DNA of 64,000 nt, from contig OZ116698.1 of NCBI GenBank assembly GCA_964199315.1, positions 19,096,001 through 19,160,000 on the forward strand, written 5' to 3'. The stretch is from Orbicella franksi. Lineage: Eukaryota. The notes beneath the pieces were generated by a model, which ran no database searches, was not told where the DNA came from, and saw nothing but the letters and a program-made list of their open reading frames with translations. Position numbers and translations under genes: made by a program. Within the stretch, counting starts at the first letter, position 1. Every line of letters starts with the position of its first letter. Positions 601-15,275 of this stretch are shown here, piece after piece.

Positions 601-3600
601 TCAAATTATCGTCTCGTCGGGACCAAGTTCAGTCGCCAAATATAAAACAGGTGCTTCTCCTTCATCCCGGTCTCCTTGGTTATTCCTAGGCTGATCCCTC
701 GAGTAATTTTCACCTTTGCTTTGCTCGTCTGGGAAATCAAACTGGTCTGAAGCTCTTGCCTTGCTTGGACGGGATCGATTTGACTTCTCTGCCGTGTTTC
801 CATCATCAGAAACATCAACTCTTAGATTTACATCCCAGGCTTTCTGGTTATTCCTAGTGTGGCCATAGCTTTGATTCTCATATTCCACGCGTTCCTTTGC
901 GGAATCAAGATGGCCGGAATCCCTCGCCTCGCTTGATCGTGACCGATCTTTCTTCATTGCGGTGTCTCCCTTTCCAGAGTGGCTTCCGTCATCTTCTGCA
1001 TTATCAAAGGCAGCACCTCTTTTAGGTCCGTAATTTTCGAGCTTGGGATGTACGGAGTTCACATTACGGAACTGATCTCTTGATGAACGACTCCTTCGAG
1101 GATCTGTGTTGAGTAGACGTGACGGGTCAAGTTGAGCATATCCATCAAACTCATTGCCTTTGCTTGGTTGCTCGAGACTCATACCCAACGGAGCGTAGAA
1201 GTTGTTATTTCGTCCGTCGTCAACGGATGGGTCAAGGGTTGAGGCAGGGCCGAACATTTTACCTGGAGGCTTCGAATAGTGCGGTTCCTCACGTTTAAGG
1301 GCGTCTTTGTGGAATTCTCTCTTTTCCAAGCTTGAATAACCAGAATCGGGGTTTCTTTTGGGGGAAACGAGCCTAACTCGCTGTTCACCTGAGGGGGACT
1401 TCTTTCGCTTAGCTTTATCATGACGGTCTTTGCTGTTTGAAGAAAAGTTTATTTTTCCGTTTTTAGGTTTAGAATTGAATTCCTCGGGGAAAGCTTCGTA
1501 AGTAGCATTAAAAGCAGCAATTGGGTTTGAGCGTTTTCGGCCATGGTGTTTCGCAATATCATTGTGTATCTGAGTAGGGAGGCGTCCATTTGCGCGGTGC
1601 TTTCTTTCAAACGCCTGATCACTGGCTTGTCTCAAATGGGCTTCGCCATCGTGTTGGTGATCACGTGTTTCCCTCATCTTAGCCTCTAGCGATGGGGCTA
1701 TTTCAGCGTATAGAGGGTCCTTCTCGCGCCTGGAAGAAGATATTCTTTGACTTCGGTACCCTGTCTCTGAGGACATGACAGGTGATATTTCCTCGTAATC
1801 TGGTATGGTGAAGGGAGCCGCGTCTGAATCATCGTTATTGAAGTCACGGGGTTCGAAGCCCGGATTGTTGAATGAACATACCAATGTATCCCGAAGCGGT
1901 CGTCTTCGAGACCTTTAAAAAAAAAAAAATACAGGTGTAATTGGCTATGAAACGCTAACTCGTTGTCTGTTTGTTAACAGGCTATCTAGCTAAGAAAATT
2001 CCATTTATTGACAAATTGTGAAATGTATTAACAAAATCGACCAGCTCAATGCTACGAAATATCTACTGCCTTGATTTTAGCAAACTGGGCTCACGGTCTC
2101 TTCGGTAATGTCTGCGCGATTTCGCAAAATAATTGTCTTATAGCAGTTACGATTCAAGATTCGCGCGGAGATAATAACATATGGCATACCACAAGCCAGA
2201 AACATGCTCGATTTAAAAAAGAGACATTTTTATCAGTGAAATTCTGACGATGTGTGTAGAAATAGCCGCCTTTTCTATTACTCGCTGTTATAGCAGGGAG
2301 TTCGTTATGTCAGTTGCACTGCCCTACAACATTTGCGCTCACATAAGGAAAGCATTCGAAAAATGAACTGCTCAAATACGAAATAATGTTTGATGAAGTA
2401 GTTTGATAACAGTTAAAATTTTGACTGCTTACCTGTAAAACAAGAGAGCAACAACGATAATGATCATCAGGAGTATCAAAGTGCCGACGACAGTGCCAGC
2501 TACTCCAACAGAAGATAACTTCTCTTGCTGGCGACCTGCGGCTTGCGTCCTTTTCGCACTGGTATTATCATCATTGCCTTCTGAATCCGATACACATGGT
2601 GGATCTTTCTCTCCATTTATCAATTCTATAGAGGTATCACCCATGTACTCTGAAATCCGCTCCCACGTACTCACCACCATTCTGCAAAGAATGACAGCTG
2701 GGATGGTCTCCCGTTCAGCTATTGACTGTGGTTCATCTAAGGGTATGAGTACCGCCGCAACGACAGTAAACAATCCTGGTTTGTCGGCTTCAGAAGACCG
2801 ATTGACCACTAGGACGTCGTCTGGTCGAAAAGCAACATTAGCGATTACCTCCCTTCTGCGCAATGTGGTTCTATCTTCCGGGCTAAAAGATAAAGAATGA
2901 AATTCATTGTGATTTTTTCCTTGTTATCTGCAAGCCTCTCTGTTAGATAAAACTCAAAAACCAACACTTTGTGAAGCGGGGAAATACCTTGATTTTGAGT
3001 TGAGAGCTAAAAGGGTGATAGGAACAATCACAATATACCTGTGACGAAGATTGCAGGGGGATTTGTCCCTGCAGTACTCGGTGAAAGCCCTTGAAATGCT
3101 CTTCCGGAAGGTATCATCTTTCCACTTAAAGCAAATAGGCAGAGAAAATAAGGTCAAACTCAAAGCAAGGCTTATTTTAATCAATATGAGGTCATTTTTA
3201 CTAATGTCATGAAGTCATAATGGACTCACTTGGTCAACTGCCGTCTTGAATGCTATTTCCACAACATCGTTACCTGGCAACATAAAGGCAAAATTAAGGC
3301 TAAATGCTCGTGCAAGTTTGAGAGAATTTCAAATATTACTCATAGGGTAAGTCCCTAATTGCACTCGCATTCATGCGATTACCTAAACTAATGCATCGGT
3401 AAATAGCGCTAAATACGCACCCTACGACTCGGGTTTCCCAAATCTTATGATGTCAGTCTATTTCAGGGTCTCATTCAAGTCGTATACCAGCAATGGGCAA
3501 GGGATCAGGCAAGTCGATGCCAGCTAAATTATTAAAATAGCAAACTTAGACTCCCTAAGGTTAAGCAAAATTTGAGAGCTACTTGTCCCAAGGGCAAGCT

Positions 3601-6600
3601 AAAATTCATAAAGGACGAGTTTTTTCGAGCCCTGGACTTACTGTTTTGCATCGATCGTTGTTTGAATTACCAACAGCGTCACACCAGACAAATAAAGATA
3701 GTAGTAGAGAGGAATACAAAGTGGAAAATTACGAAGCATTCTGCACTGGGATTCTTTACACGTAACGACAGTAGATTCAATTTAAAAATCAACAAATTCA
3801 CATCTGTGCTTCTTACAGGCCATAATTGATACATACCTACAAGGAGTTGACAGCGTGACAACCCATACCTCATAGGGCATACACAACTGAATGCACCTTG
3901 TTTTCCTTTTATACAAGTGCCACCATTCTGACACGGATTTGAGATGCACGGATCTCTTGAGGATGGCGATGTCGCAGAGGAGGCCAATAATATATTTGAA
4001 GACACTGATGGCGATGGGGTCATTGTTGTCTCACTTAATGAAGTTGACTTTATGAAAGATGAATGTTTTGTTGACATATGTGACGAGGTAGGCTTTCCTT
4101 GTGAGTTCCTTCGTGTAGCAGCAATTGATGAAGACGAAACATGCAGTATTTGTGACCTCGAAAACAAAGGTACCCTGAATAAAGTGGTTGAGAGCGATGG
4201 TGCATGTGATAACGACCGCGAAGATGAAGATGAGGACGATGATGGGGGTGAGGATGAAGGTAAGGGTGACGGTTTTTGTGAGGGTGAAGATGAAGATGAA
4301 GGTGAAGGTGAAGGTGAAGGTGAGGGTGGCGGTGACGGTGGCGGTGACGGTGACAGTGACGGTGACGGCGAAGGAGAAGGAGAGGGTGAAGGTGAAGGTG
4401 AAGGAGAAGGTGAAGTTGGAGGTGGAGGTGGAGGTGAAGATGAGGATGAAGATGATGTTGAAGGTGATGGTGAGGGTGAAGGAGAAGGAGAAGAAGAAGG
4501 AGAAGGAGAAGATGAAGGTGAAGGTGAAGATGACGATGAGGATGAAGATGGTGGTGACTGTGATGACGACGGTGATGTTGAAGAAGAAGGAGAAGGAGAA
4601 GGTGACGGTGAAGGGGAAGGAGAAGGTGCAGGTGCAGGTGCAGGTGGAGGTGGAGGTGAAGATGAGGATGAAGACGATGGTGAAGGTGATGGTGACGGTG
4701 AAGGGGAAGGAGAAGAAGAAGAAGAAGAAGGTGAAGGTGACGGTGAAAATGAAGATGAAGGTGAAGGTGAAGGTGAGGGTGACGGAGAAGGTGAAGGAGA
4801 AGGAGAAGGAGAAGGAGAAGGAGAAGGTGATGGTGAAGGAGAAGGAGAAGGTGATGGTGATGGTGAAGGTGAAGGTGACGGTGACGGTGAAGGTGAAGGT
4901 GAAGGTGAGGGTGAGGGTGACGGAGAAGGTGAAGGAGAAGGAGAAGGAGAAGGTGATGGTGAAGGAGAAGGAGAAGGAGAAGGTGATGGTGAAGGTGAAG
5001 GCGATGGTGAAGGTGAAGGCGACGGTGAAGGTGAAGGTAATGGTGACGGAGAAGGTGAAGGAGAAGGTGACGGTGAAGATGAAGGTGAAGGTAACGGTAA
5101 AGGTGACGGTGACGGAGAAGGTGACGGTGAAGGTGAGGGTGAAGGTGAAGGTGAAGGTGAAAATGAAGGTGAAGGTGATAGATAAGATGAAACTGTTGAT
5201 GATGGGAAAACAGGTGTTGTTTTACAGGAAATGCCAACGGCAACATTAGCAGGACACGCACACTGGTAACCCCCAGGTTTTAAGAGACAGAGATGTGTAC
5301 ACCAACCGTTAAACAAGGTGCAAGGGTGATTGTCTGAAACGTGAAACAATGAAAGTTATAAGTTATGATTTACAAGGCACTGACCCATCTGACCCATTTC
5401 AAGCTATGTATTTGTCTTTTACAGAGGCTTTAGAAGGTCTGTCATAAAGCTAAATCTTCCGTCATCGCATCAGGTTAAATGCAATGCCCTTAAAATTCCG
5501 ACCGAACCCATTATAACTTGTAATTATTCCTTGAAATAGCTTGCTGGCGTTGGAAAGCAACTGTAACTTAATCTAATCATGATTAGTTTTCGTTTTGAAG
5601 CTCATTTATCTACATGCAATCTGTCATTGCAGACGTTTTCCAGAACTCGACCAGCACAAAACTAAGGCAAATACCCAAAGTAAAGGAATCAATAGTGAGA
5701 GAACATCTAAAGTGCATATTAAAACTGGTCTATTGACATACCAGGTATCCCGGTATAGTTATGGTAGACATGAACGTCTCGAGGTCTCGAGAAGCTTCCA
5801 GCGAGACGTTTCACGTTACTACCAGTCATCTTATCTGCCGAATAAACAGATCCAAAAGTACTCCAATACAACGTATTTTCTTTCAGTGTTAATCCGTAGG
5901 GCTGGAATAAATACGCACTTCCCACAGAGAGGGTAACCTTAGCACCATTTCCTTGTTGTAAGTCAGTGTACTGTATTACAGAGTTGCTCGTGTCAACCCA
6001 GTAAAGTCTCCTATTTTCGGGATCTAGTGCTAATCCATTTGGTTTCGACGATTGCCACCAGGCGCTGGAGAATTGTACTAGGGTTTTCCTCATGCTTCCG
6101 TCCATAGAGGCACGTTCAATAGTAGGTTGTGTATTACTCCAGGAGGACCAGTACATGATCCTTAAGAAAACATAAAAATTCCATTAAAATTACAAAAAAA
6201 AAAAAAACATCGTTGACTAGCTGTCGCCTGTGTGGAATAAAATGCAGATTTACAGGCAGCAAACCAGAATTAAAGAGCAATGCTGGCAAGAGTGTAAATA
6301 GAGTAAAAGAGCTAAAAACCGGCAATTGATAATTATGTCCAGCGACTTAAAGACTGGGTTAGGTGGGGCTGGACGAAAAAGTAATTGTTTCGAGGTTAAA
6401 ATGTACAGTGCTTGGAAGCGCATCGAGCGGCTTACAAAATGGCTTGAGCGGAATGTTTAGCTCTGTGACACAGTAGAGCCATTCAATAAGTGTTTTTTTT
6501 TACTAGACCACTGTTATCTGTTTAAATTTTGTTGAACAATCGAGGAAGTGTTTTGGTTTCTTACAGGTCATTTCTGCAGGTTCGGGAATGGACTAAAATT

Positions 6601-9600
6601 CAGTAGCTTGTAACGGAGACTATAGTGCTGGAAAATCTCATAAAAACAACCTCGCGTAATTTGCATTTGAAAATACTCCACCTCATTAGCCTGTATTGGC
6701 CTTTCGCAACAACATGCTGCATGGCAAAAGAATGCATCAGCCTACAAAGAAGCGACTTCAAACATTTAAGCTTCAGTTTTCTGTGTTTTACATACCCTAG
6801 TGCAGGCTTGTCATTCAATATGGTCGATTTTTTACTCATGATGGGCTACTGTTATTTAAATGCAATTCTTTCCGGGAATATTTAAATGTCATATTGCTAT
6901 GAACTGCTGACGTGCGTGGATGTCTGTCAGAATTTCATTTTGCAAACTCGAGGTATTGGCTCCTGTGTCCAGAACACGACCTGAGGAGCTCCCGCTCTCT
7001 ATATGTACTCATTGTTTATATATTCTTACCCGTTCTTCAAGTCCAACACAATATCCATAGGCTTCTGATTGTTCTGAGAGACTAGAACCTTCCTTTCTGA
7101 TCCATTGAGTTTTGACACTTCAATCCTATTGGCATCAAAGTCTGTCCAATACAGATTCCGTCCAACGTGATCCACTGCAAGTCCTTTAGGACTTTGCAGA
7201 CCGTTGTTGACAATAATCTTTTTTGCGCTACCATCAGGATGAGCACGTAATATCTGACGCAGCTGCAGCTCGGACCAGTAAATGAAGCGTTCCTGTGGGT
7301 CATAGTCCAGTGCTTCAGGTTCTGGCGTATTGCCTAATTTCACAGCAGTTGGTTGTGCTTGTGGGTTATCCAAATTAATCAGGAATATCTTCCGTCTACT
7401 TGAGTCGGCATACAACAAAAATTCGCTAAAATAACCTGCAATATAGAAGGAGACGACAATAACTTATCCAAACTATTATGGTTTTTATCACGACGAGGTT
7501 TTTTTGCTTTTGTCTATGTTGACAACCAAACGTTTACATGGTAAGCATAATTATGACTCATTTCACGTGGCCTGCAGTTGTTTCAATTTAAGTGTGGTAC
7601 CGGTGATTCTATCTATTTCGCGGTACACGCCAACCACAATTATTGCGCAGTAGAGCTCATTTGATCATTATGGGCTACAAAGTAACTATAGTAATGTTTA
7701 GGTTAGTTTCAGGCAAGACTGTTAAAAATTTCAATAAAAGCTTACAATTTTTCTTGTCAGTCTTCAATTTCATTTCATTAGGACATGCGCACTGATGTCC
7801 ACGCGGCGTCAGTAAACAAAGATGGCTGCAACCTCCGTTGTTTATCCCACATGAGGAATTTACTGCGAAAGAAAGGCATAATCGAAACGTGAATATTTAG
7901 GTGCAAGAATTAAACAAACAATAAAAACAAGAATAATCAAAGACATTTTTTAAAGAAGAAATAACGAAAGATTTCTTTTTTGTGGTGCAAAGTCTTACAA
8001 CACTCATTTAATTTCATCCATTTTTTTTTTTTTTTTTTCGCAATTTAGCCACACGTACCTGTTTGCACAGTGTCATTCGCGTCATATACGCAGACATCTT
8101 CTGGTCCACGCAAGTTATCAACAATTTTTTTATTATTTCCACCTGATACTCTATCAGCCCTGTAAACTGCCCCACTCTGTCCCTGCCCTTCTGTCCAGTA
8201 GATGTAATTTCCATGTAGTGCTACACCCTTTGGATATCTAAAGGAAGGTCTTGTCAAAAACGTGGATCGTGTATTAGTGCTGAGGGAAACAAAGCTGATT
8301 TCAGTGCTTAGTCCGACCACATAATAAAGACGATTGCGTTCTTTGTCCAAAGCGAGGCCATTTGGTGTTCCAAAATGGAAAAAGGTCAAAGTGATTATCA
8401 CTTTTCTATTTGTCCCGTCCATATCGGCTCGTTCTATCTTTGGGTTGTTGAGTCCACTCGCTCCTTCAGCCCAATACATGTACCTGCCAAGAAGGTGCTA
8501 AGTTGTAAAAATAATGCTTAAGAAATAGAAAACATGTACCGTGTTTCTGTTGGGTTTTAGTATAAATCTACAAAATGGGAATAAATCTTTGCGCAAGTTA
8601 AAATCATGACACATGCTGACATCTAACTGGCATCCACAAACTCTGAAACTGGAGCAAGCTAGACATCCATCTGTTTATTGAACAAGCTAATGAAATCCCG
8701 GCCTTCAATCAAATTCAAGGCTTAAAAAAATCAAGGTTTTTTGGAGAGCCGACAAATCATAGGTGTAAACAAGGTCAAACAAACGAAGCAAAGATGAATC
8801 CTGCATATATGGCTTTCTTTAACGAGGCGAGGAAGGCGAAGTGATAATACATAATACGCACGCACTGCTGGCATTTACAAAGAAGCAAAGCTCATAACAT
8901 AGACTTTTCTTTATATTTCCGTTCTGATCTCACATTTGGTGACGAAACATATTCTGTACAAGGAGAAACACCTTTTCTAGGTTTACGAGCGTTTTTGAAC
9001 CGATCAAGTGATTGTTGTGGGCGTAGGAATTTTTTTACGGTCAAAACTGAATAATTTGATCGTCTTAGATGCTCAAACCACAAAAACAACTTCTCCGATA
9101 ATCTGATAAGTAGGCTAATGCCGAGCTCAATCGCCTCAATCGCCCTTATCTTTCATTAGGTTCATGTACATTCCTGATTACCCCTAATGCCCACCGAAAC
9201 TTTTAGCAGCTTTTGGAATAATTACGCCAGACGAAAATTTTAGAGAACGAAGAAAACCGTCCGAAAATTATGGGACATGATAAAAGTGAGCACATCAATT
9301 CCGAAGATTAAAGAGAAACTTTATAGTTTTCCGAAAAAAATTGAAAAATCTAGAGCGTCGCTGGGAAACAAAATTCGAAATTTTTAGGTAATCTTCCATC
9401 CGAACAGATATTTTACCGAAATATTCCGTTGGGTGCCCCCGAGCAGTGTGCGCTTGTTAACAAAATAATGGCCGCTTCTTGAATTGGCGTTTTCGAAGTG
9501 TCTGTGAAGAGGATTTAGATAAAGTTCTGAACGACTAGTAGATTTATACTAAAACAATTAGATTATTCGCTCGCGATTTCTATGCGTGATAGTTGACTCG

Positions 9601-12600
9601 GGCAGCGCCCTCGTCAACTATCACGCAATAGAAATCTGTAGCTCATAATCTATTTGTTTAAAATATAAACACGAGTGGAAGGTTGGGAGAACGAGAAATG
9701 CTGTGGGAACACGAACCGACAGGCGAGTGTTTCCACAGCTTTTTTCGAGTTCTCCCAAACAGGAGACAAAACGAAACATCTCTAGAAGCACGAGGACTAT
9801 TGAAAGGTAACTGCTCAGTCAGAAAGAGATTAATTACATCTTTTTCAAATATTCAATATTCAGGATCATCGCAGTTTTACACACGACTTAAGCAGTTGTG
9901 AAATTAACGCCTGAAAATCCCGTTCAGGCCTGAATTTTTTTTCAGACTTTGATTTCACAACTGCTTAAGTTGTGTGTATTACTGCGATGATCATGTTTTC
10001 ATGTCTTTCTCCGCAGTACAGAAATAAATTATATGATCTCTCATATATGCACTTGTATTCAAGATTCAGTTTCCGAACCTATACCGTACATGCAGTGATC
10101 TCTCTGGGTTTGAGGCCCCATTAGGCAGGTCCTGGTATACCACCTCCCGTTAATTTTTGGCCTAAATGTCCTGTATCAACAATTCTCTCGGCTGCGTAGC
10201 AGGCTGGATTTTGAACTCGACTCATTAACAAACCTCTCGCAGCTTCGTCACTCGTGTTCGCGGCCACCGTCAAAAGAAAACCACTCGCGCGCGAACTCTC
10301 GTCAGCTGGGCAAAGGTAACAATTTTCATACTCGTTATCTCAGGATATCTGATCTAGAAAACCCGTATTCCATTAATTTTTTCCCCCCAAATATCCTGTA
10401 TCCCGTTAATTTTTTTAATAAATATCCCAAATCCCGAAAACCTGTAATATAATATAAGGCCTCAAGTTTGATTGATAATCGAAAGACATTAAATTCACAC
10501 TTACCCATTTTCCATGTCCAGGACAATATCAACAGGGTCATAAAGATTTTGATACACGAGCGTCTTCCTAAAGGAACCATCCAGTTTGGACACTCCTATT
10601 CTATTGCCTGTCCTGTCTGTCCAATATAGATTCCTTCCAACAGAGTCCACTGCAATTCCATCTGCTGTTCCCAGCTGATCCACTACCTGCTCCTGAGAGC
10701 TACCATTCAAATGCGCGCGAAATATTTCATCTCTGGAGCTATCAGACCAGTAGACGTACCCCTCGACGGGATCAAAGTCCACCCCTGCTGGTCTCCTGAC
10801 ATCATTGAGTGGAAGGGCTGTAGCGGTTGTTGAAACCGAGGAACCGGGTAACAGAGGGATTTGGAAGAGTTCTTGCTGCGTTCTATCGACAAGCAGCAGG
10901 CGCGCAGAGCTCCCTACAAAATGGAACGAAAATAATGTTAGCTAAATGATCGCTATTTTTCTGCTTTGCCGTTTCTACTTTAGATAGTTAATCAATTCAA
11001 GATTGTAGGAAAGGAAACAGGCAAATTCTATCCATTCAAGGTAGAAAAATAAATGCAAAAACTCAAAGTCCTCACAGAAGAAGTATCAATGGTAACTGCA
11101 CTCTATTTCTCCTCTTGAAATGAACTCTTGTTAGCAACTACATGCCCATTCATTATTATTATTACTGGCAGACAGCCGGTGAAAGTTCACTTAAGACTTT
11201 CCCTGCCGTGTACACCGTTGAAATTGTGAAAGATTTGGTTTTCTAGCTAGAATATTCCGAGTTTAGTAACCAAAAACAGTGTTTATCAATCATCTATACA
11301 GGTTTGCTTTCTTGAATGAGGAAGAATATTCGTGCCATGGTCTTATCTAACAATCTGCCTAATCATGCTTACTATTTTCATGCATTTGGTTGCGTTTTTT
11401 CCAATTGCTAAGAGATCGCAACGGAAAGTCGACTTTCTTAGGGGTCTTTCTCATTTTATCGTCGTTACAAAACCCAGTACCTTCATCATCACACGTCTTT
11501 CCATCAGACTTCAAAATCTCTCCTGGTGGGCACGCGCATTGGTTCCCTGCTGGTGATAACAGGCAGAAGTGGCTGCATCCGCCATTGTGGTGGCAAGCGG
11601 AGCTACCTAAAAATGTAAGTGGCACTTTTGAAAAGAGTGGAAGTCGGAGAAAATCTGGCCAATTATGCTGCCATGCAGGGAAAGAATAATTACCTATTTA
11701 AAAAGCTAACGCGATCAAGGTTGGCTGCCAAACTGTTTTAAGTCTTAGCAGCTGAATTTTATCACATTTAAAATAGGACCTTGTCCTTGGACATTATCTG
11801 TTCCTCAAAGCTCACAGTTTTCCTCGAGCAACGCTCTCGGGAAGCAGCTGTTCACTTTTCGGATCAGATAATGTCCACGTACAAATATTCTAGTATATTT
11901 TCTCGCCAAATGGAGGCTATTGGTTATATAGCTGCTGCAACTATTTCTGAACATGCTGATAGATACATACCTTTCGGTTGTCGCACAGGAGAAAACATGG
12001 CCAGCCTTAGAACGTTACTTCCTCCAAGCCCCGTGTAGCTTCCAAGGGATTGCTTCGTTGCTTTGTCGATCTTGTCGATACTTTGGCTGCTCGTGTCGCT
12101 GTAGTAAAACACTCCGCTGTACAAAACAATGTCGTAAGGTCGGATACTGAAAGGGAATGTCTTAAAACTCTGTCTGCTGTTTCCATTGAAGTCAACGCTT
12201 TCTATTCGTCTGGTCTGAGAATCAACCCAGTAAAGACGGTTTGCAGAAAAGTCGAGGGTTATTCCATTCGGTCTAGGTGGCCACCATAGGCTGGTAAAAC
12301 TGACCAAGGTTGTCTTACTGTCTCCAGATAGAGTGGCTCTCTCGATTCTCGCTCGAAGACCGCGGCTTATCCAAAACATGTACCTACAAAACCAAGAGAG
12401 TAGTTGAGAAAATAAATGCCCTTGGGATGTATGATTTACAAAATGATTGGCGATGATATTAAAGCATGGTCAAATTTCAGGCCGCTAGCCTTCACATTTT
12501 GCCATGAATCTAAAGTACAAGTCTAACATCTCCTGCCTCAAAAGCGTGAAATGTGGGAGGTACCATCTCTTTTATAGCAGAACGTCTAATGGCCCTCCCT

Positions 12601-15275
12601 TTCCCTTGCCAGCCCTCCCTTGTCGCAGATTGGATACAAACAGGACAAAAGAGTACGAGAATGGAAGAATAGAGCACTTTCACTTACGTGTCAAGCAGCC
12701 ATGCAAATTTGTGGCAACAAAAGAAAATTTTTACATGAGAAAAGAGTTTTGGAACACCAATATGGCTGCCGTGACGTCATGTGAAAATACTCTATATGAT
12801 CCCTCGTTTTCTATTTGCAACGCATACCCCTTTCGTGGATCTACAGCTATTTCCCGTGGGCGGCGGATTCCTGAAGTGATCAGAGTTCGTCTGTTTTTGC
12901 CATCCAGTTGTGCCACCTCAATACGTTCATTGGTGTAGTCAGTCCAGTAAATGAGGTCACTCTCCCACTCCACTGCTAATCCGTCAATCTCGCCAAGATT
13001 GCTATCTGTTAAAATGTCGTCTACCTTTCCACTAGTAACATTCAATCTCTTTATGGCGTTTGGCCGAGTCTCGGTCCAGAACACCAAGTTGAGTTTCACG
13101 TGAACGTCGACAGCCTCAACGGAGTTGAGATTGCTTAAGACTGTGTGCACTTTGGAGGAGTTGATTTCAATCGCTTTTAGTGTATTGCCGTTACCATAAT
13201 ACAGACAAGGTAACGATTGACACGAACTTGATGATACGCCTGGCAGGAACGAAAAAATGATATGTTAATTCCCTTTGTTATTTCCACTAACAAAACACAA
13301 TAATTAACAATTATTCCACGAGCGCGCGTTGGATATTTGCTCATACACCATAATGACTGAGCCAATGAAAAGTCCTGAACTGCATTATCCAATGGTCCAG
13401 TTTTTTTTTTTTTTAATAATTTCTGTTCCATTCTATTATAAACGGTTTGTAATCCTCCCCTCGCCTATCTGGTTAAAAATGTACAGGTGTACCCCGCTAG
13501 CCATCTCAAACTCTTAAAGGAAACAAAAATAGTTCGAGATGTCGGGGGTTCGAGATAGCCGATAGCAAGAGACCAAAAAAGTAATTCCAAGAGAAACTGA
13601 CTTAAGTTCGAGACTGAGTGGAAAGTTCGATACAACCGAGTTCGAGATGCTCTAATGTTACTGACTATTTTAAGGCGGTTTTTTTTTTAAGAACAAGGAA
13701 GTCTTCTCGCTGGGAGACTAAATTCTCTTCAGTGACATCACAAGAAATGTTTAAACATCAGTAAGGAGAAATGATCATCATCTACCGTGCGCAGCTGTGC
13801 TCTCTGCCTCCTTAAACTTTTCACTTCCAGAGTCAAACGTCAAGTCATTTTGACGTTCTTAATTTAATCTTATATTTCTTTGAATGATGAAGACCCATTG
13901 TGAGATTATTCAAATGAAAGCTAACGAACACTGCTATTATGTGCACTGCTTGTTTTTCATATTTCAAGATATATTTCAATAATTCGTTTTGAAATTGGCC
14001 GTCTTGGAGCCTGGTACTCATGAGAGGCAAAAAAACATTAAATTCACTGTGTTTCTTGGAAAATTAATTAATTTTAATTTTATAATTTTCTTTTTGATTG
14101 TCCCCAATTAGTAGAGGGTCTTAACCCTCGGCTATATATTCTGAACCTTTAAAAAAGTCGTTGATTGACTGAATTGTGATGTTTGAGTAATCCGTCAAAC
14201 TACGCTCTGCCAATGACAGTCGCAGCTATCAATATAAGGGTTCGTTTCTTCAAGAAAATCCAAGATTGTTTTCTTGAATCCGAAAAGGAATTTTGCGTTT
14301 CTTTTCTAAACAGATTAATTCAAGATCTCTCGGATCATGGTGTATCAAAGGAACTGAAGAATCCACTCTGGGCAAGGATTCTTTGGTTCCTTTGATGCAC
14401 CATGATCCAAGTAATCTAGGATTGATCTGTCTAGTAAAGAAACGCAAAATCCGTTTTCGGATTTAAGAATTAACACAATCTTGGATTTTCTTAAAGAGAC
14501 ACACGCTAAGTTTCTAAGGCCGGAATCTCCATACCACTCTGGTCATTACAGCGGTTGCTTAGTGACATGAACGGTGGCAGTCTGGTTTGTTCGTGCCGGC
14601 ACGTATTAGCTAAATTCTTTCCCTGTTTAACTGAAAGTTATCCAGTGGTGCAGATTAAATGGCCCTTTGTGATCGTTATGCAGAAAGTATTTTTCATTTA
14701 CATTCGCGTTTTTTTACACAAGTAAAGAATAAAAAATAAGAACGCCGTAATTTCAAACAACGATGTTTCGTCTTTGAACTAACCATATATCATGTATGTA
14801 TTAAATAATTTACTCGCAAACTTCCGCGAAACGTGACACCGACAGAATTGGTGCCGTATATCTGTTGTAAAGCCGAACAAAACTAGCTTTATACAATACT
14901 GGACTGCAAATGTGCAAAAATTTGTCATATGTGGTGAAATTTTAAGCTAAATAACTAGGAAAAATGTCTTCTGAAAAAATGACGAGATATTTACTTTGAA
15001 AATTCTAGTCTGAGATTATGCAAAATGTTAACGTTTGGTATACTTCAGTGAGGGATGATAATGACCCCCGTTTGATCTGTAATGGGTATAGGAAAGATGA
15101 TTTAGGTAAGCTAAGGACAAGGTGTTCGTGTAGTGCACCGCCACCTTAACTTACTGTCGGTTTTCTGGTTAACTCCCTAGACAGAGATACTCAGCATACC
15201 TTCGTAAATGAGCAGCCATGTCATTACTATCAAAAATCCTCGAAGAACGGAGACCGGCGACGATTTTACAGCCAT
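601..15275 (-). CDS. LRP-like type I receptor, 2063 aa: signal peptide - 3x(YWTD beta-propeller + EGF) - Ser/Pro stalk - EGF - unassigned domain - TM - long cytoplasmic tail. complement(join(601..1912,2433..2882,3039..3124,3230..3273,3837..5333,5742..6160,7030..7435,7746..7862,8059..8483,10505..10913,11481..11606,11971..12383,12828..13239,15200..15275))
   Basis: All 13 introns are GT-AG with compatible phases; total 6192 nt = 2064 codons. Signal peptide [30 protein letters not shown]-type repeats IYWTD, LYWVD, VYWSD, LYWTD, IYWSE. EGFs [74 protein letters not shown]. Exon 1 was chosen for signal peptide plus phase-1 donor and is slightly less certain. Confidence 0.92.
4215..5180 (-). repeat. 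Coding low-complexity repeat, mostly (TCACCT)n/(TCTCCT)n = (Ser-Pro)n, ~320 aa, with poly-Ser and poly-Pro runs
   Basis: Plus strand reads (gaaggt)n/(gaagga)n/(gacggt)n. It lies inside the in-frame 1497-nt exon 3837..5333, between two EGF domains. Confidence 0.95.
9552..9659. repeat. ~108-bp imperfect palindrome (hairpin-type interspersed repeat)
   Basis: AAACAATTAGATTAT...GATTTCTATGCGTGATAGTTGAC..GGGC pairs with GCCC..GTCAACTATCACGCAATAGAAATC...ATAATCTATTTGTTT around an AGC loop. Confidence 0.85.
9864..10055 (+). mobile_element. Truncated second copy of the tRNA-bearing family, again with an inverted 5' segment and a 14-bp TSD
   Basis: TATTCAATATTCAG (9850..9863) vs TATTCAAGATTCAG (10056..10069), 13/14. 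ACTTAAGCAGTTGTGAAAT is inverted against ATTTCACAACTGCTTAAGT. Keeps the tRNA 3' end CCCGTTCAGGCC. Confidence 0.75.
10110..10465. mobile_element. MITE with TGAGGCC/GGCCTCA termini and CCCGTTAATTTTT subterminal repeats, probably with a nested repeat at ~10185..10315
   Basis: Terminal 7-bp inverted repeat; repeated CCCGT..ATT motif. Confidence 0.5.
12669..12795. mobile_element. Short MITE (ATAGAGCAC...TTTCAC / GTGAAAATACTCTAT); related fragment at ~58465..58575
   Basis: Imperfect terminal inverted repeat and the shared internal CCAATATGGC.GCCGTGACGTCATGTG motif. Confidence 0.6.
14238..14506. mobile_element. Almost fully palindromic MITE with TAA TSD (PIF/Harbinger-like)
   Basis: Arms such as GGATCATGGTGTATCAAAGGAAC / GTTCCTTTGATGCACCATGATCC and AAAATCCAAGATTGT / ACAATCTTGGATTTT; TAA on both sides. 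Confidence 0.8.

Follow-up and report, generated by a model that had tools for sequence, protein, structure and literature searches.

In the LDL receptor family (LDLR/VLDLR/ApoER2, LRP1, LRP2/megalin and LRP4), clusters of LDLa repeats are combined with six-bladed YWTD propellers followed by EGF modules, a Ser/Thr-rich region of the kind that carries O-linked sugars before the membrane, a single transmembrane (TM) helix and a membrane-proximal motif of the FxNPxY type; some members also have a PDZ-binding C-terminus. LRP5/6 (Arrow) have four propeller-EGF modules, three LDLa repeats and PPP[ST]Px[ST] motifs. The gene described here, from a 64-kb window (the whole stretch of DNA that was analysed) of the genome of the coral Orbicella franksi, shares the YWTD propellers and EGF modules of this family and, at motif level, its TM helix and FxNPxY-type tail, but it lacks any LDLa repeat, the first propeller following directly on the signal peptide. 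Compared with the O-linked domain of LDLR, its stalk is roughly tenfold longer and is nearly pure Ser-Pro, and an extra EGF module and a membrane-adjacent domain (MAD) lie between stalk and membrane. Where LRP5/6 have four modules the coral protein has three, and it has neither of their other two features.

Gene structure and the propeller head

The locus is a genuine coral gene, is expressed, and encodes a predicted type I membrane glycoprotein of 2063 aa. As rebuilt from the sequence, it comprises 14 exons on the minus strand (15275..601), with GT-AG borders at every intron and an open frame that begins with the ATG at 15275 and ends with the stop codon at 603-601; the length of the protein is that given by the first-pass annotation, and the domain order proposed there is borne out by the rebuilt model and by Pfam searches of the exons. 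The frame is unbroken over 6.2 kb, and the locus is single copy in the genome. The start codon has a Kozak-like context and is preceded by an in-frame TGA 33 nt upstream, itself downstream of the sole good acceptor-like site. The features, with the evidence for each, are as follows.

15200..15275, minus strand: exon 1, start codon and predicted signal peptide (MAVKSS...LLIYEG); ATG, in-frame stop 33 nt upstream, GT donor, hydrophobic h-region
12828..13239, minus strand: exon 2, propeller 1 first half, directly after the signal peptide; Pfam Ldl_recept_b E 6e-15, AG/GT borders, correct phase
11971..12383, minus strand: exon 3, propeller 1 second half; Ldl_recept_b E 2e-8
11481..11606, minus strand: exon 4, EGF1; Pfam FXa_inhibition E 1.3e-10, Cys spacing 5-3-8-1-12
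10505..10913, minus strand: exon 5, propeller 2 first half; Ldl_recept_b E 6e-19
8059..8483, minus strand: exon 6, propeller 2 second half; Ldl_recept_b E 5e-14
7746..7862, minus strand: exon 7, EGF2; open frame, Cys spacing 6-3-8-1-12, GT-AG borders
7030..7435, minus strand: exon 8, propeller 3 first half; Ldl_recept_b E 1.6e-20, a loose RNA-read end at 6161 fits the exon 3' end
5742..6160, minus strand: exon 9, propeller 3 second half; Ldl_recept_b E 4.6e-13, RNA joint 5333/5742
3837..5333, minus strand: exon 10 (499 aa), coding for EGF3, 332 aa of Ser/Pro sequence, about 90 Ser/Thr-rich aa and EGF4; RNA joints at both borders, EGF matches
4278..5178, minus strand: core array of (TCN CCN)n hexamers coding for (Ser-Pro)n; TRF period 6, 149.7 copies, 81% matches
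3230..3273, minus strand: exon 11, MAD strand beta1; RNA joints 3124/3230 and 3273/3837, transcript-contig ORF P0019
3039..3124, minus strand: exon 12, MAD helix alpha1; RNA joints, P0019
2594..2882, minus strand: exon 13, 5' part, MAD beta2-beta3-alpha2-beta4 (FRPDDVLVV ... INGEKDPPC); structure matches
2435..2509, minus strand: exon 13, 3' end, TM helix followed by RSRRR; sequence
601..1912, minus strand: exon 14, 437-aa cytoplasmic tail and stop codon; RNA joint 1910/2431 (cut +2), highest read depth, orthologous tails
1855..1872, minus strand: FNNPGF, an FxNPx[F/Y] motif 15 residues past the TM helix; motif in related tails
604..615, minus strand: C-terminal ETII, a class I PDZ-ligand pattern; conserved in relatives

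Raw polyA RNA-seq reads from two runs (X23, X24) contain joints at 1910/2431, 2882/3039, 3124/3230, 3270/3834 (cut +3, that is 3273/3837) and 5333/5742, and so back the five 3' introns, including both borders of the Ser-Pro exon. Read depth at the two ends of this exon is similar to that of neighbouring exons. The exon, for which long-read confirmation had been proposed, therefore has both of its borders marked by RNA joints, and no joint that would skip it was seen among the polyA reads, which cover its ends and not the repeat core (4212-5184). As independent evidence, the transcript-contig ORF P0019 (633 aa, 99% identical, 31 member sequences) has the same splicing from exon 11 through 12 and 13 to 14.

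Pfam places Ldl_recept_b in six exons (best E 1.6e-20), with 13 YWTD-like motifs over the three propellers, and FXa_inhibition/EGF matches at the three EGFs that follow the propellers and at EGF4, whose Cys spacing is 4-5-9-1-8. The best solved relatives of the propeller 3 exon are LRP4, LRP2 and LRP6, and nidogen is also among its relatives. The reported absence of LDLa repeats held: no exon has a PF00057 match in Pfam, a regex scan for DCxDxSDE-type motifs was negative in all six frames of the 64-kb window, and no Ldl_recept_a family is listed for the orthologous gene pieces of Desmophyllum pertusum, of which the N-terminal one (446 aa) has a length that fits the signal-peptide exon plus propeller exons. 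PPPSPxS motifs of the LRP5/6 type were likewise said to be missing, and indeed no PPP[ST]P occurs anywhere in the 2063-aa protein. The gene would show that the 'EGF-precursor' head of LDLR and LRP can be used in the absence of LDLa repeats, binding ligand on its own at the end of a very long spacer.

The Ser-Pro stalk

The stalk spans residues 973-1396 and its 424 aa include 201 Ser, 144 Pro and 16 Thr, with a longest perfect (SP)n run of 92 aa. Codons of the array have C at position 2 in 284 of 290 cases and C or T at position 1 in 284 of 290, while position 3 is A in 119, T in 130, G in 29 and C in 12. These counts mean that variation sits at synonymous sites and that the Ser-Pro frame has stayed open for about 1 kb; the variation is not that of a neutrally decaying microsatellite. 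Stalks of (SP)n, about 300-540 aa long, are found in three other coral assemblies (L002, from D. pertusum; L030, with about 540 aa; and L032), and at the three loci measured the dominant hexamers differ (TCACCT, TCACCA and TCGCCA). Judged from these comparisons, the tract is kept as protein and not as DNA across the window and the three other loci.

An artefact, in which a microsatellite was wrongly drawn into the gene model or the gene is a decaying pseudogene, has some encouragement from the abundance of TCNCCN arrays in the genome as perfect microsatellites, although the genome-wide pattern is uninformative, since six-unit TCNCCN matches are fewer (912) than those of the reversed control (1947) and perfect microsatellites dominate. 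Such an explanation is already close to refuted by spliced polyA reads that tie both ends of the Ser-Pro exon to its neighbours, by the 6.2-kb open frame, by the restriction of array variation to third codon positions and by the presence of (SP)n in the corresponding exon of three other assemblies. As a side observation, gene callers either break the gene at the repeat or call an antisense poly(Gly-Glu/Asp) frame, so that current annotations of corals probably overlook or split it, as is the case in D. pertusum and in the prokaryote-style ENA calls.

In more distant members of the family the corresponding exon codes for mucin-like Ser/Thr/Pro stalks of the ordinary kind, 123 and 282 aa long, among them classic PTS repeats such as VTPSPSVTPSHT. 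Ser-Pro composition is thus, as far as the sequences of these relatives tell, not essential to the gene family. The best reading of the Ser-Pro stalk is therefore that of a mucin-type spacer in a lineage-specific variant, which would be renewed by slippage while selection holds the Ser-Pro frame. The stalk is predicted to be heavily O-glycosylated and extended and, at about 0.25-0.31 nm per residue, would span some 100-130 nm, lifting the head clear of the glycocalyx or mucus; the rigid polyproline-II rod with O-glycans put forward by the first-pass annotation is plausible. The tract clearly exemplifies a coding hexamer array that turns over in DNA while its dipeptide product is kept, and is well suited to the study of selection on low-complexity spacers.

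Extensins consist of Ser-Hyp4 blocks with Tyr cross-link motifs. In the coral stalk the alternating SP pattern dominates, with four SPPP+ sites and no YxY, and it is not assigned to the extensins. The long (SP)n run noted by the first-pass annotation stands, while its 'extensin-like' label is imprecise; alternating (SP)n is of the non-contiguous-Hyp type (arabinogalactan or Chlamydomonas) (PMC3355594). A literature search for Ser-Pro stalks in animals gave no relevant result.

Membrane-adjacent domain, tail and related genes

The region between EGF4 and the membrane, which had been left as an unassigned domain, can now be placed through its D. pertusum orthologue (about 59% identical to the window protein), on which the structure was modelled. 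An initial AF2 model (9 sequences, TM helix included) reached a pLDDT of 53 and was set aside; with a trimmed 15-sequence alignment pLDDT was 82.8 and pTM 0.78, with elements E4-10, H18-35, E66-73, E79-87, H103-120 and E126-129. This model aligns to CELSR1, PCDH15 MAD12 and CDH23 MAD28 with VIA Z scores of 11.6, 11.1 and 10.0 (rmsd 2.4-2.5 A over 91-98 residues, at 10-16% identity to the cadherin MADs), and the next group of structures, which includes the SEA-class GPR126 and IA-2, follows at Z of about 7. On this modelling evidence, the 140-aa juxtamembrane domain is by its fold a ferredoxin-like, cadherin-type MAD, and would represent the use of such a domain in a non-cadherin protein.

Further matches consistent with the MAD fold came from Foldseek against AFDB, to the juxtamembrane region of cnidarian 'mucin-like' proteins (E 3e-7), and from the ESM Atlas; against the PDB, Foldseek returned nothing at E<=0.001, the top rows being the collectrin-like neck of ACE2 and MADs. 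Sequence searches found no cadherins, a profile search of PDB sequences recovered only TM-helix look-alikes (DAP12, ErbB2 TM), and Pfam gave nothing real on the juxtamembrane exon and its relatives. The D. pertusum fragment does have a precomputed Pfam match, to PF26284 (DUF8077).

Identity with a SEA domain was considered and rejected. There is no match to Pfam SEA (PF01390) at E<=10, a genome-internal hhalign comparison of the family profile with ten SEA domains gave a probability of about 1%, and the G/SVVV autoproteolysis site is absent, the equivalent stretch reading FRPDDVLVV. An ESM-Atlas feature search did rank SEA clusters first, but at 0.82, a value often reached by shuffled sequences. 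At most, the domain could be said to be of a 'ferredoxin-like, SEA-related fold class'.

The disordered tail of 437 aa carries FNNPGF, degenerate NPxY motifs, the tyrosine motifs YEEI, YAEI and GYAQL, and the C-terminal ETII. The first motif of O. franksi ends in Phe and not Tyr, and the second and third NPxY are degenerate (DPLY, NATY). These tail motifs are conserved across eight related loci whose tails are 25-79% identical: every related tail compared has a motif of the SFNNPG[F/Y] type or one that differs little from it (FNNPGY in L030/L031; variant in L004, L005 and L006), and the C-terminus is ETII, ETTI, EETII or ETGV in L003, L030, L032, L007 and L004. At motif level, the tail thus appears to carry an LRP-type endocytic and PDZ-binding signature. 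The conserved FxNPx[F/Y] and other tail motifs point to endocytosis or signalling and not to pure adhesion; of the 'adhesion or recognition receptor' suggested earlier, recognition is retained as the probable role and pure adhesion is not.

The YWTD-headed, stalked gene family was seen only in coral-type assemblies. As the first-pass annotation had supposed, no described orthologue of identical architecture was found; the one named relative, that of D. pertusum, is annotated as separate 'hypothetical proteins', and no relevant description of a coral YWTD/mucin receptor was found in the literature. Two SRCR-headed genes on contig C4 of the O. franksi genome have juxtamembrane exons that match the family profile with an hhalign probability of 92-95%. 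Because these two genes carry a homologous unit, the stalk-EGF-MAD-TM cassette would seem to be common to all three and to act as a reusable chassis. An NPxY-bearing exon was not found within about 2-3 kb downstream of the SRCR paralogues. The shared chassis makes this a concrete gene set for testing.

Proposed function and comparison with known systems

Domains and short linear motifs together suggest that the protein is most likely a stalked endocytic or recognition receptor, a reading that we hold with somewhat more belief than doubt. Ligand would be bound by the propellers themselves, as it is in LRP4, LRP5/6 and nidogen. As in LDLR, LRP1 and megalin, PTB-domain adaptors would be recruited by the membrane-proximal FxNPx[F/Y] and bring about clathrin-mediated uptake, and the C-terminus would dock to PDZ scaffolds. 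It is this combination of propeller binding, FxNPx[F/Y] uptake and PDZ docking that makes a stalked receptor of this kind the most likely interpretation. With its endocytic motifs and its reach through the mucus, such a surface receptor is a candidate for a part in uptake or recognition where the host meets its environment or its symbionts. A bolder and distinctly speculative extension, which we consider unlikely as a whole, is that one chassis, made up of a long O-glycan stalk, an EGF, a MAD and a TM helix, underlies a whole family of stalked receptors in stony corals. Their swappable heads (YWTD, SRCR) would sample ligands, microbes or symbionts in the surface mucus at a distance of about 100 nm, for internalisation; the YWTD member at least would add a signalling tail, and its near-pure (Ser-Pro)n rod might be modified in a way unusual among animals, through dense O-glycosylation of Ser or even through prolyl hydroxylation of the kind seen in algal (SP)n glycoproteins. 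Prolyl hydroxylation of the stalk is not expected from the specificity of collagen-type P4H.

Other roles can be envisaged. The protein could be mainly a membrane-tethered mucin that builds or senses the glycocalyx and mucus, its stalk a barrier or lubricant, its MAD unfolding or shedding under force (compare SEA in MUC1/3/12/13/17 and MAD12 in PCDH15) and its head only a matrix tether. The order of stalk, EGF, juxtamembrane alpha/beta domain, TM helix and tail is like that of transmembrane mucins, distant relatives have classic PTS repeats, the nearest AFDB folds are in cnidarian 'mucin-like proteins', and MAD12 is mechanically weak in simulations (10.1101/460097). Yet the domain has no Pfam SEA match, only about 1% hhalign probability against ten SEA domains and no G/SVVV site, and the conservation of three propellers and FxNPx[F/Y] speaks for selection on ligand capture and uptake, so that we think a mainly mucin-like role improbable, if conceivable. 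A molecule that anchors cells to matrix or skeleton, with a nidogen-like propeller binding laminin-type partners and an ectodomain perhaps shed into the skeletal organic matrix, seems to us quite improbable. Nidogen is indeed among the solved propeller relatives, a protein with five YWTD domains occurs in the skeletome of Corallium rubrum (PMC7853314), and ectodomains of TM proteins occur in the skeleton of Acropora (PMC4890752); but the protein is absent from the coral skeletal proteome literature searched, in which the 'LDLr' proteins are LDLa/MAM proteins (PMC4890752), and endocytic tail motifs are unexpected in a static anchor. A divergent signalling co-receptor of the LRP4 or LRP5/6 type, acting in Wnt or agrin-like pathways after loss of its LDLa repeats, would accord with the best matches of the propeller exon (LRP4, LRP2, LRP6), but is very unlikely given three propellers in place of four, no LDLa repeats or PPP[ST]P motif, a tail of the NPxY type, a stalk, EGF and MAD that have no counterpart in LRP4/5/6, and a gene family seen only in coral-type assemblies.

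Beyond the LDL receptor family, the architecture has several partial analogues. Transmembrane mucins (of the MUC1 and MUC3/12/13/17 type) also have a long Pro/Ser(/Thr) repeat stalk encoded in one large exon and varying in length between species, and beyond it an EGF, a compact juxtamembrane domain of alpha/beta type, the TM helix and a tail that bears tyrosine motifs; the coral juxtamembrane domain is not a canonical SEA, however, the N-terminus is a globular triple-propeller head and Thr is scarce in the stalk (16 of 424 aa). Pro-EGF is likewise a type I protein that combines YWTD propellers with EGF modules, one of them close to the membrane, and lacks LDLa repeats, but it has two propellers against three and no long stalk, and EGF4 of the coral protein, with its spacing of 4-5-9-1-8, lacks the CX7C spacing of EGFR ligands and is separated from the TM helix by the 140-aa MAD. 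Dimerisation and mechanical weakness of MAD12 have both been described. The MAD fold itself has also been described, the weakness of MAD12 being a prediction of simulations (10.1101/460097); in PCDH15 (MAD12) and CDH23 (MAD28) the domain lies directly before the TM helix, as in the coral protein, and in CELSR1 a domain of this kind lies between the cadherin and EGF regions, whereas the coral protein has no cadherin repeats and aligns with these domains at 10-16% identity. The long alternating Ser-Pro runs resemble those of plant and green-algal Hyp-rich glycoproteins, in which this motif is a P4H substrate in Chlamydomonas and an arabinogalactan glycomodule in plants (PMC3355594), but the coral gene is an animal one, has no dominant SPPPP or YxY blocks and has relatives with normal mucin stalks. 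The receptor is an unusual new arrangement of known parts, rather than a new kind of system.

Gene structure and transcription

We show that the receptor gene on the minus strand of the window encodes an expressed type I protein in which a head of three YWTD-propeller/EGF modules is followed by a Ser-Pro stalk, a fourth EGF, a juxtamembrane domain, a transmembrane helix and a cytoplasmic tail. Rebuilt by hand from open frames, splice signals and reading phase, the gene has 14 exons between 15275 and 601 of this 497-Mb coral genome, with GT..AG borders in 13 of 13 introns and a 6192-nt coding sequence that translates into 2063 aa, the length already given by the first-pass annotation.

Exons of the window gene (E1 to E9 placed by open frame, splice signals and phase, with any further evidence as listed)
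E1, 15275-15200, minus
E2, 13239-12828, minus: Pfam Ldl_recept_b
E3, 12383-11971, minus: Pfam Ldl_recept_b
E4, 11606-11481, minus
E5, 10913-10505, minus: Pfam Ldl_recept_b
E6, 8483-8059, minus: Pfam Ldl_recept_b
E7, 7862-7746, minus
E8, 7435-7030, minus: Pfam Ldl_recept_b
E9, 6160-5742, minus: Pfam Ldl_recept_b; RNA joint 5333/5742
E10 (Ser-Pro exon), 5333-3837, minus: open frame, phase; RNA joints at both borders
E11, 3273-3230, minus: RNA joints at both borders; P0019
E12, 3124-3039, minus: RNA joints at both borders; P0019
E13, 2882-2433, minus: RNA joints 2882/3039 and 1910/2431; P0019
E14, 1912-601, minus: RNA joint 1910/2431 (cut +2); P0019

Raw polyA RNA-seq from four runs under the same species label was aligned to 601-6200. 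Two runs, X23 and X24, placed 698 and 2566 reads on these 5.6 kb at an exon depth of ~10-140x, and their five spliced joints (1910/2431, cut +2; 2882/3039; 3124/3230; 3270/3834, cut +3, that is 3273/3837; and 5333/5742) all fall exactly on predicted exon borders, and a loose end of reads at 6161 extends into exon 8 at its 3' border. The E11-E12-E13-E14 junctions are identical in P0019, a transcript-contig ORF from another data set (633 aa, 99% identical). Skipping of the Ser-Pro exon had been named beforehand as evidence that would count against the model; no joint removing it was seen among the X23 and X24 reads on 601-6200, and its unique ends (3780-4340, 5089-5333) have a depth similar to that of neighbouring exons. 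The repeat core (4212-5184) was masked in read mapping, continuity there resting on the open frame and comparative data, and in the gene's 5' half the junctions were set by GT-AG borders, phase and Pfam continuity rather than by reads.

Runs X21 and X22 had zero reads on 601-6200; they could come from another tissue or stage or from a sample with another organism, or the gene could be silent in them. Within the intron between exons 10 and 11 (3274-3836), a depth of 5-13x, against 20-50x in the adjoining exons, loose read ends at 3563 and 3593, and the start of P0019 (MLPG...) point to partial intron retention, unspliced pre-mRNA or an internal start. At 13 sites in 674-4177 the two RNA-seq runs with reads depart from the assembly (12 fixed, site 779 polymorphic); seven of these differences are non-synonymous (e.g., G2040E, N1931D, L1873P, E1874V, R1707K and P1391L), all of them in the tail or S/T-rich stalk and none within conserved motifs.

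The Ser-Pro stalk

The stalk (residues 973-1396; 424 aa, with 201 Ser, 144 Pro and 16 Thr) contains perfect (SP)n runs of up to 92 aa and is Ser/Thr-rich from about residue 1307 on. Its DNA is a hexamer array of 150 copies with 81% matches (TRF), in which every Ser is encoded by TCN, the first two codon positions hardly vary and the third is mixed (A 119, T 130, G 29, C 12). The equivalent exon encodes (SP)n in three other coral assemblies, with stalks of 344 aa at L002 (the Desmophyllum pertusum locus), 378 aa at L032 and ~540 aa of S/P at L030; among the loci measured, the main hexamer is TCACCT in the window, TCACCA/TCGCCA at L002 and TCGCCA at L032. The uniform TCN codons, the mixed third positions and the persistence of (SP)n with differing hexamers show that selection acts on the Ser-Pro dipeptide and its frame, not on the DNA; the array is thus renewed by slippage in each lineage while its Ser-Pro reading is retained.

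Two further loci bear on how far this composition matters. L004 (42% identity in the juxtamembrane exon) has an ordinary Ser/Thr/Pro mucin-like stalk of 123 aa between its EGFs, and L005 (25% identity) has one of 282 aa with repeats of VTPSPSVTPSHT type. Since the best match of both in the window's genome is the window gene, they look like orthologues from more distant taxa. The stalk is thus a spacer free to vary in its exact composition, (SP)n being derived and limited to part of the family. The label 'extensin-like' in the first-pass annotation does not fit, as the stalk is alternating SP with four SPPP+ sites and no YxY. Under the Hyp-contiguity scheme alternating SP is of the non-contiguous type; Chlamydomonas P4H1 was crystallised together with a (Ser-Pro)5 peptide (PMC3355594). 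Read antisense, the array gives a long open frame of poly(Gly-Glu/Asp) (413 aa in the window, 3944-5185, plus strand), which prokaryote-style gene callers predict in place of the real exon at L030 (7375-8844, minus) and L032 (6728-7840, minus); such calls are an annotation artefact.

Head, juxtamembrane domain and tail

Single-exon Pfam scans matched Ldl_recept_b in E2, E3, E5, E6, E8 and E9 and FXa_inhibition or EGF in EGF1, EGF3 and EGF4; EGF2 is called on Cys spacing (6-3-8-1-12), without a Pfam scan. There are 13 YWTD-like motifs across the three propellers, which start five residues past the region of predicted signal-peptide cleavage, and the best solved relatives of a propeller exon are LRP4, LRP2 and LRP6, with nidogen and LDLR lower in the list. 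The earlier reading that LDLa repeats and LRP5/6-type tail motifs are lacking holds: LDLa had no match on any exon (Pfam) nor in any frame of the 64-kb window, and the tail contains no PPP[ST]P. Coding exons upstream of the ATG in the same frame are unlikely, since an in-frame TGA stands 33 nt before it, downstream of the only good acceptor-like site. Additional LDLa exons there, the earlier reading's own counter-case, are further disfavoured by the LDLa-free window and by the annotated N-terminal piece of D. pertusum (446 aa), which lacks the Ldl_recept_a family and has the length of a ~25-aa first exon plus propeller exons.

A full HMMER scan with exon 13 against 1.84 billion representative proteins found only nine relatives, eight being fragments of 72-175 aa (that of D. 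pertusum a spliced gene model) and the ninth, a repetitive 1623-aa protein, spurious; a word-indexed search added nine further fragments. The sole named relative is 'hypothetical protein OS493_028958 [Desmophyllum pertusum]', whose gene model covers the whole juxtamembrane domain. A SEA identity is counted against by the lack of any Pfam match on the domain and by an hhalign probability of 1% against ten SEA domains from the same genome. P0003, a D. pertusum fragment from the end of EGF4 to this domain, has a precomputed match to PF26284 (DUF8077) in the protein database, and so the domain may already be catalogued as a DUF.

In an exhaustive structural comparison, the predicted model of the D. 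pertusum domain scored highest with CELSR1 (Z 11.6), PCDH15 MAD12 (Z 11.1 to 9.6), the Nup54 ferredoxin-like domain (Z 11.0) and CDH23 MAD28 (Z 10.0), and well below these came IA-2 (Z 7.3), the GPR126 SEA region (Z 7.0), and dystroglycan-complex and Notch HD (Z about 5). Foldseek/AFDB returned the juxtamembrane part of cnidarian 'mucin-like proteins' (E 3e-7), a 'SEA domain-containing protein', Fat/CELSR cadherins and KIAA0319L, and an Atlas search was concordant, adding ACE2/collectrin. MAD12 is a membrane-adjacent domain described as ferredoxin-like, Nup54-like, mechanically weak and dimer-inducing (10.1101/460097). At the level of a predicted model these comparisons show the fold class, and we file the coral domain as MAD-like by fold; because structural-alignment identity is only 10-16%, it may or may not share descent with those domains.

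After the transmembrane helix (VGVAG...LLFY) come RSRRR and a stretch of 437 residues, mostly polar, of which 73 are acidic, 75 basic and 13 Tyr. Comparison with the tails of eight related loci shows conserved motifs, overall tail identity among close relatives found by search being 49-79%.

Tail motifs across related loci
SFNNPG[F/Y] or close variant, 10-45 residues past the TM helix: every locus compared; Tyr in L030/L031
[DE]YEE[ILM]: five lineages
Second NPxY position: NPLY/NPAY in L032, L006, L007; DPLY in the window gene
Third NPxY position: NPTY/NPIY in L030, L004, L032; NATY in the window gene
GYA[QK]LDPS: six lineages
ETII, ETTI, EETII or ETGV at the C-terminus: five loci

In LDLR, LRP1 and megalin, FxNPxY is bound by PTB-domain adaptors and drives uptake through coated pits, and LDLR accepts an aromatic residue other than Tyr at the final position of the motif. 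Class I PDZ domains bind S/T-x-hydrophobic C-termini. By this analogy the tail motifs are the main reason for favouring a receptor for endocytosis or recognition over a mucin or adhesin with a purely structural role. In such a receptor the propellers would bind ligand, as those of LRP4, LRP5/6 and nidogen bind their partners; the stalk would be O-glycosylated and extended over ~100-130 nm (0.25-0.31 nm per residue); the MAD-like domain may dimerise or serve as a compliant element; and PTB adaptors would mediate uptake while the C-terminus docks PDZ scaffolds. L005 and L007, from one ENA sample (ERZ25072724), are different family members (P0008-type and P0007-type), each with three clean NPxY motifs in its tail, so that some taxa may have two paralogues against one in the window's genome.

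A shared chassis and comparison with known receptors

Searching the genome with P0005, a distant family member, gave two weak matches on contig C4, both within tandem genes with several SRCR exons (Pfam E 1e-14 to 1e-22).

SRCR-headed genes on C4
L041, ~10,694,000-10,700,300, plus: SRCR exons, juxtamembrane exon
L043, ~10,722,000-10,729,700, plus: SRCR exons, juxtamembrane exon

In both, an S/T/P-rich stretch and EGF exon ends '...CEVYVG' (window gene '...CQLLVG'), and the next, juxtamembrane-plus-TM exon is a homologue of the window gene's MAD exon, with hhalign probabilities of 92% and 95% against the family profile (E 8e-7 and 2.5e-8). In this coral the stalk-EGF-MAD-TM unit thus carries heads of at least two kinds. 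The 2-3 kb downstream of the SRCR genes revealed no NPxY tail exon.

At L002 (GCA_029204205.1, MU826854.1, 1-15000) the orthologue is split into three models (446, 411 and 175 aa), the one retrieved being named a hypothetical protein; its 1.3-kb (SP)n exon (8783-10057) is without annotation, and the TM segment lies in another frame (13633-13815) with only a short tail-like ORF, containing PYAEI, which could be an assembly frameshift or a real truncation. A well-described orthologue of the same architecture, which would have made the receptor a known one, was not found among proteins within the search length range; this range excluded full-length annotated models, so automatic 'LRP-like' annotations may exist. 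Every part of the window gene is of a known kind. What is new is the combination of an LDLa-less triple propeller with a very long (SP)n spacer, an EGF, a cadherin-type MAD and an LRP-type tail, together with the confinement of the family to coral-type assemblies and the chassis common to the window gene and the SRCR genes.
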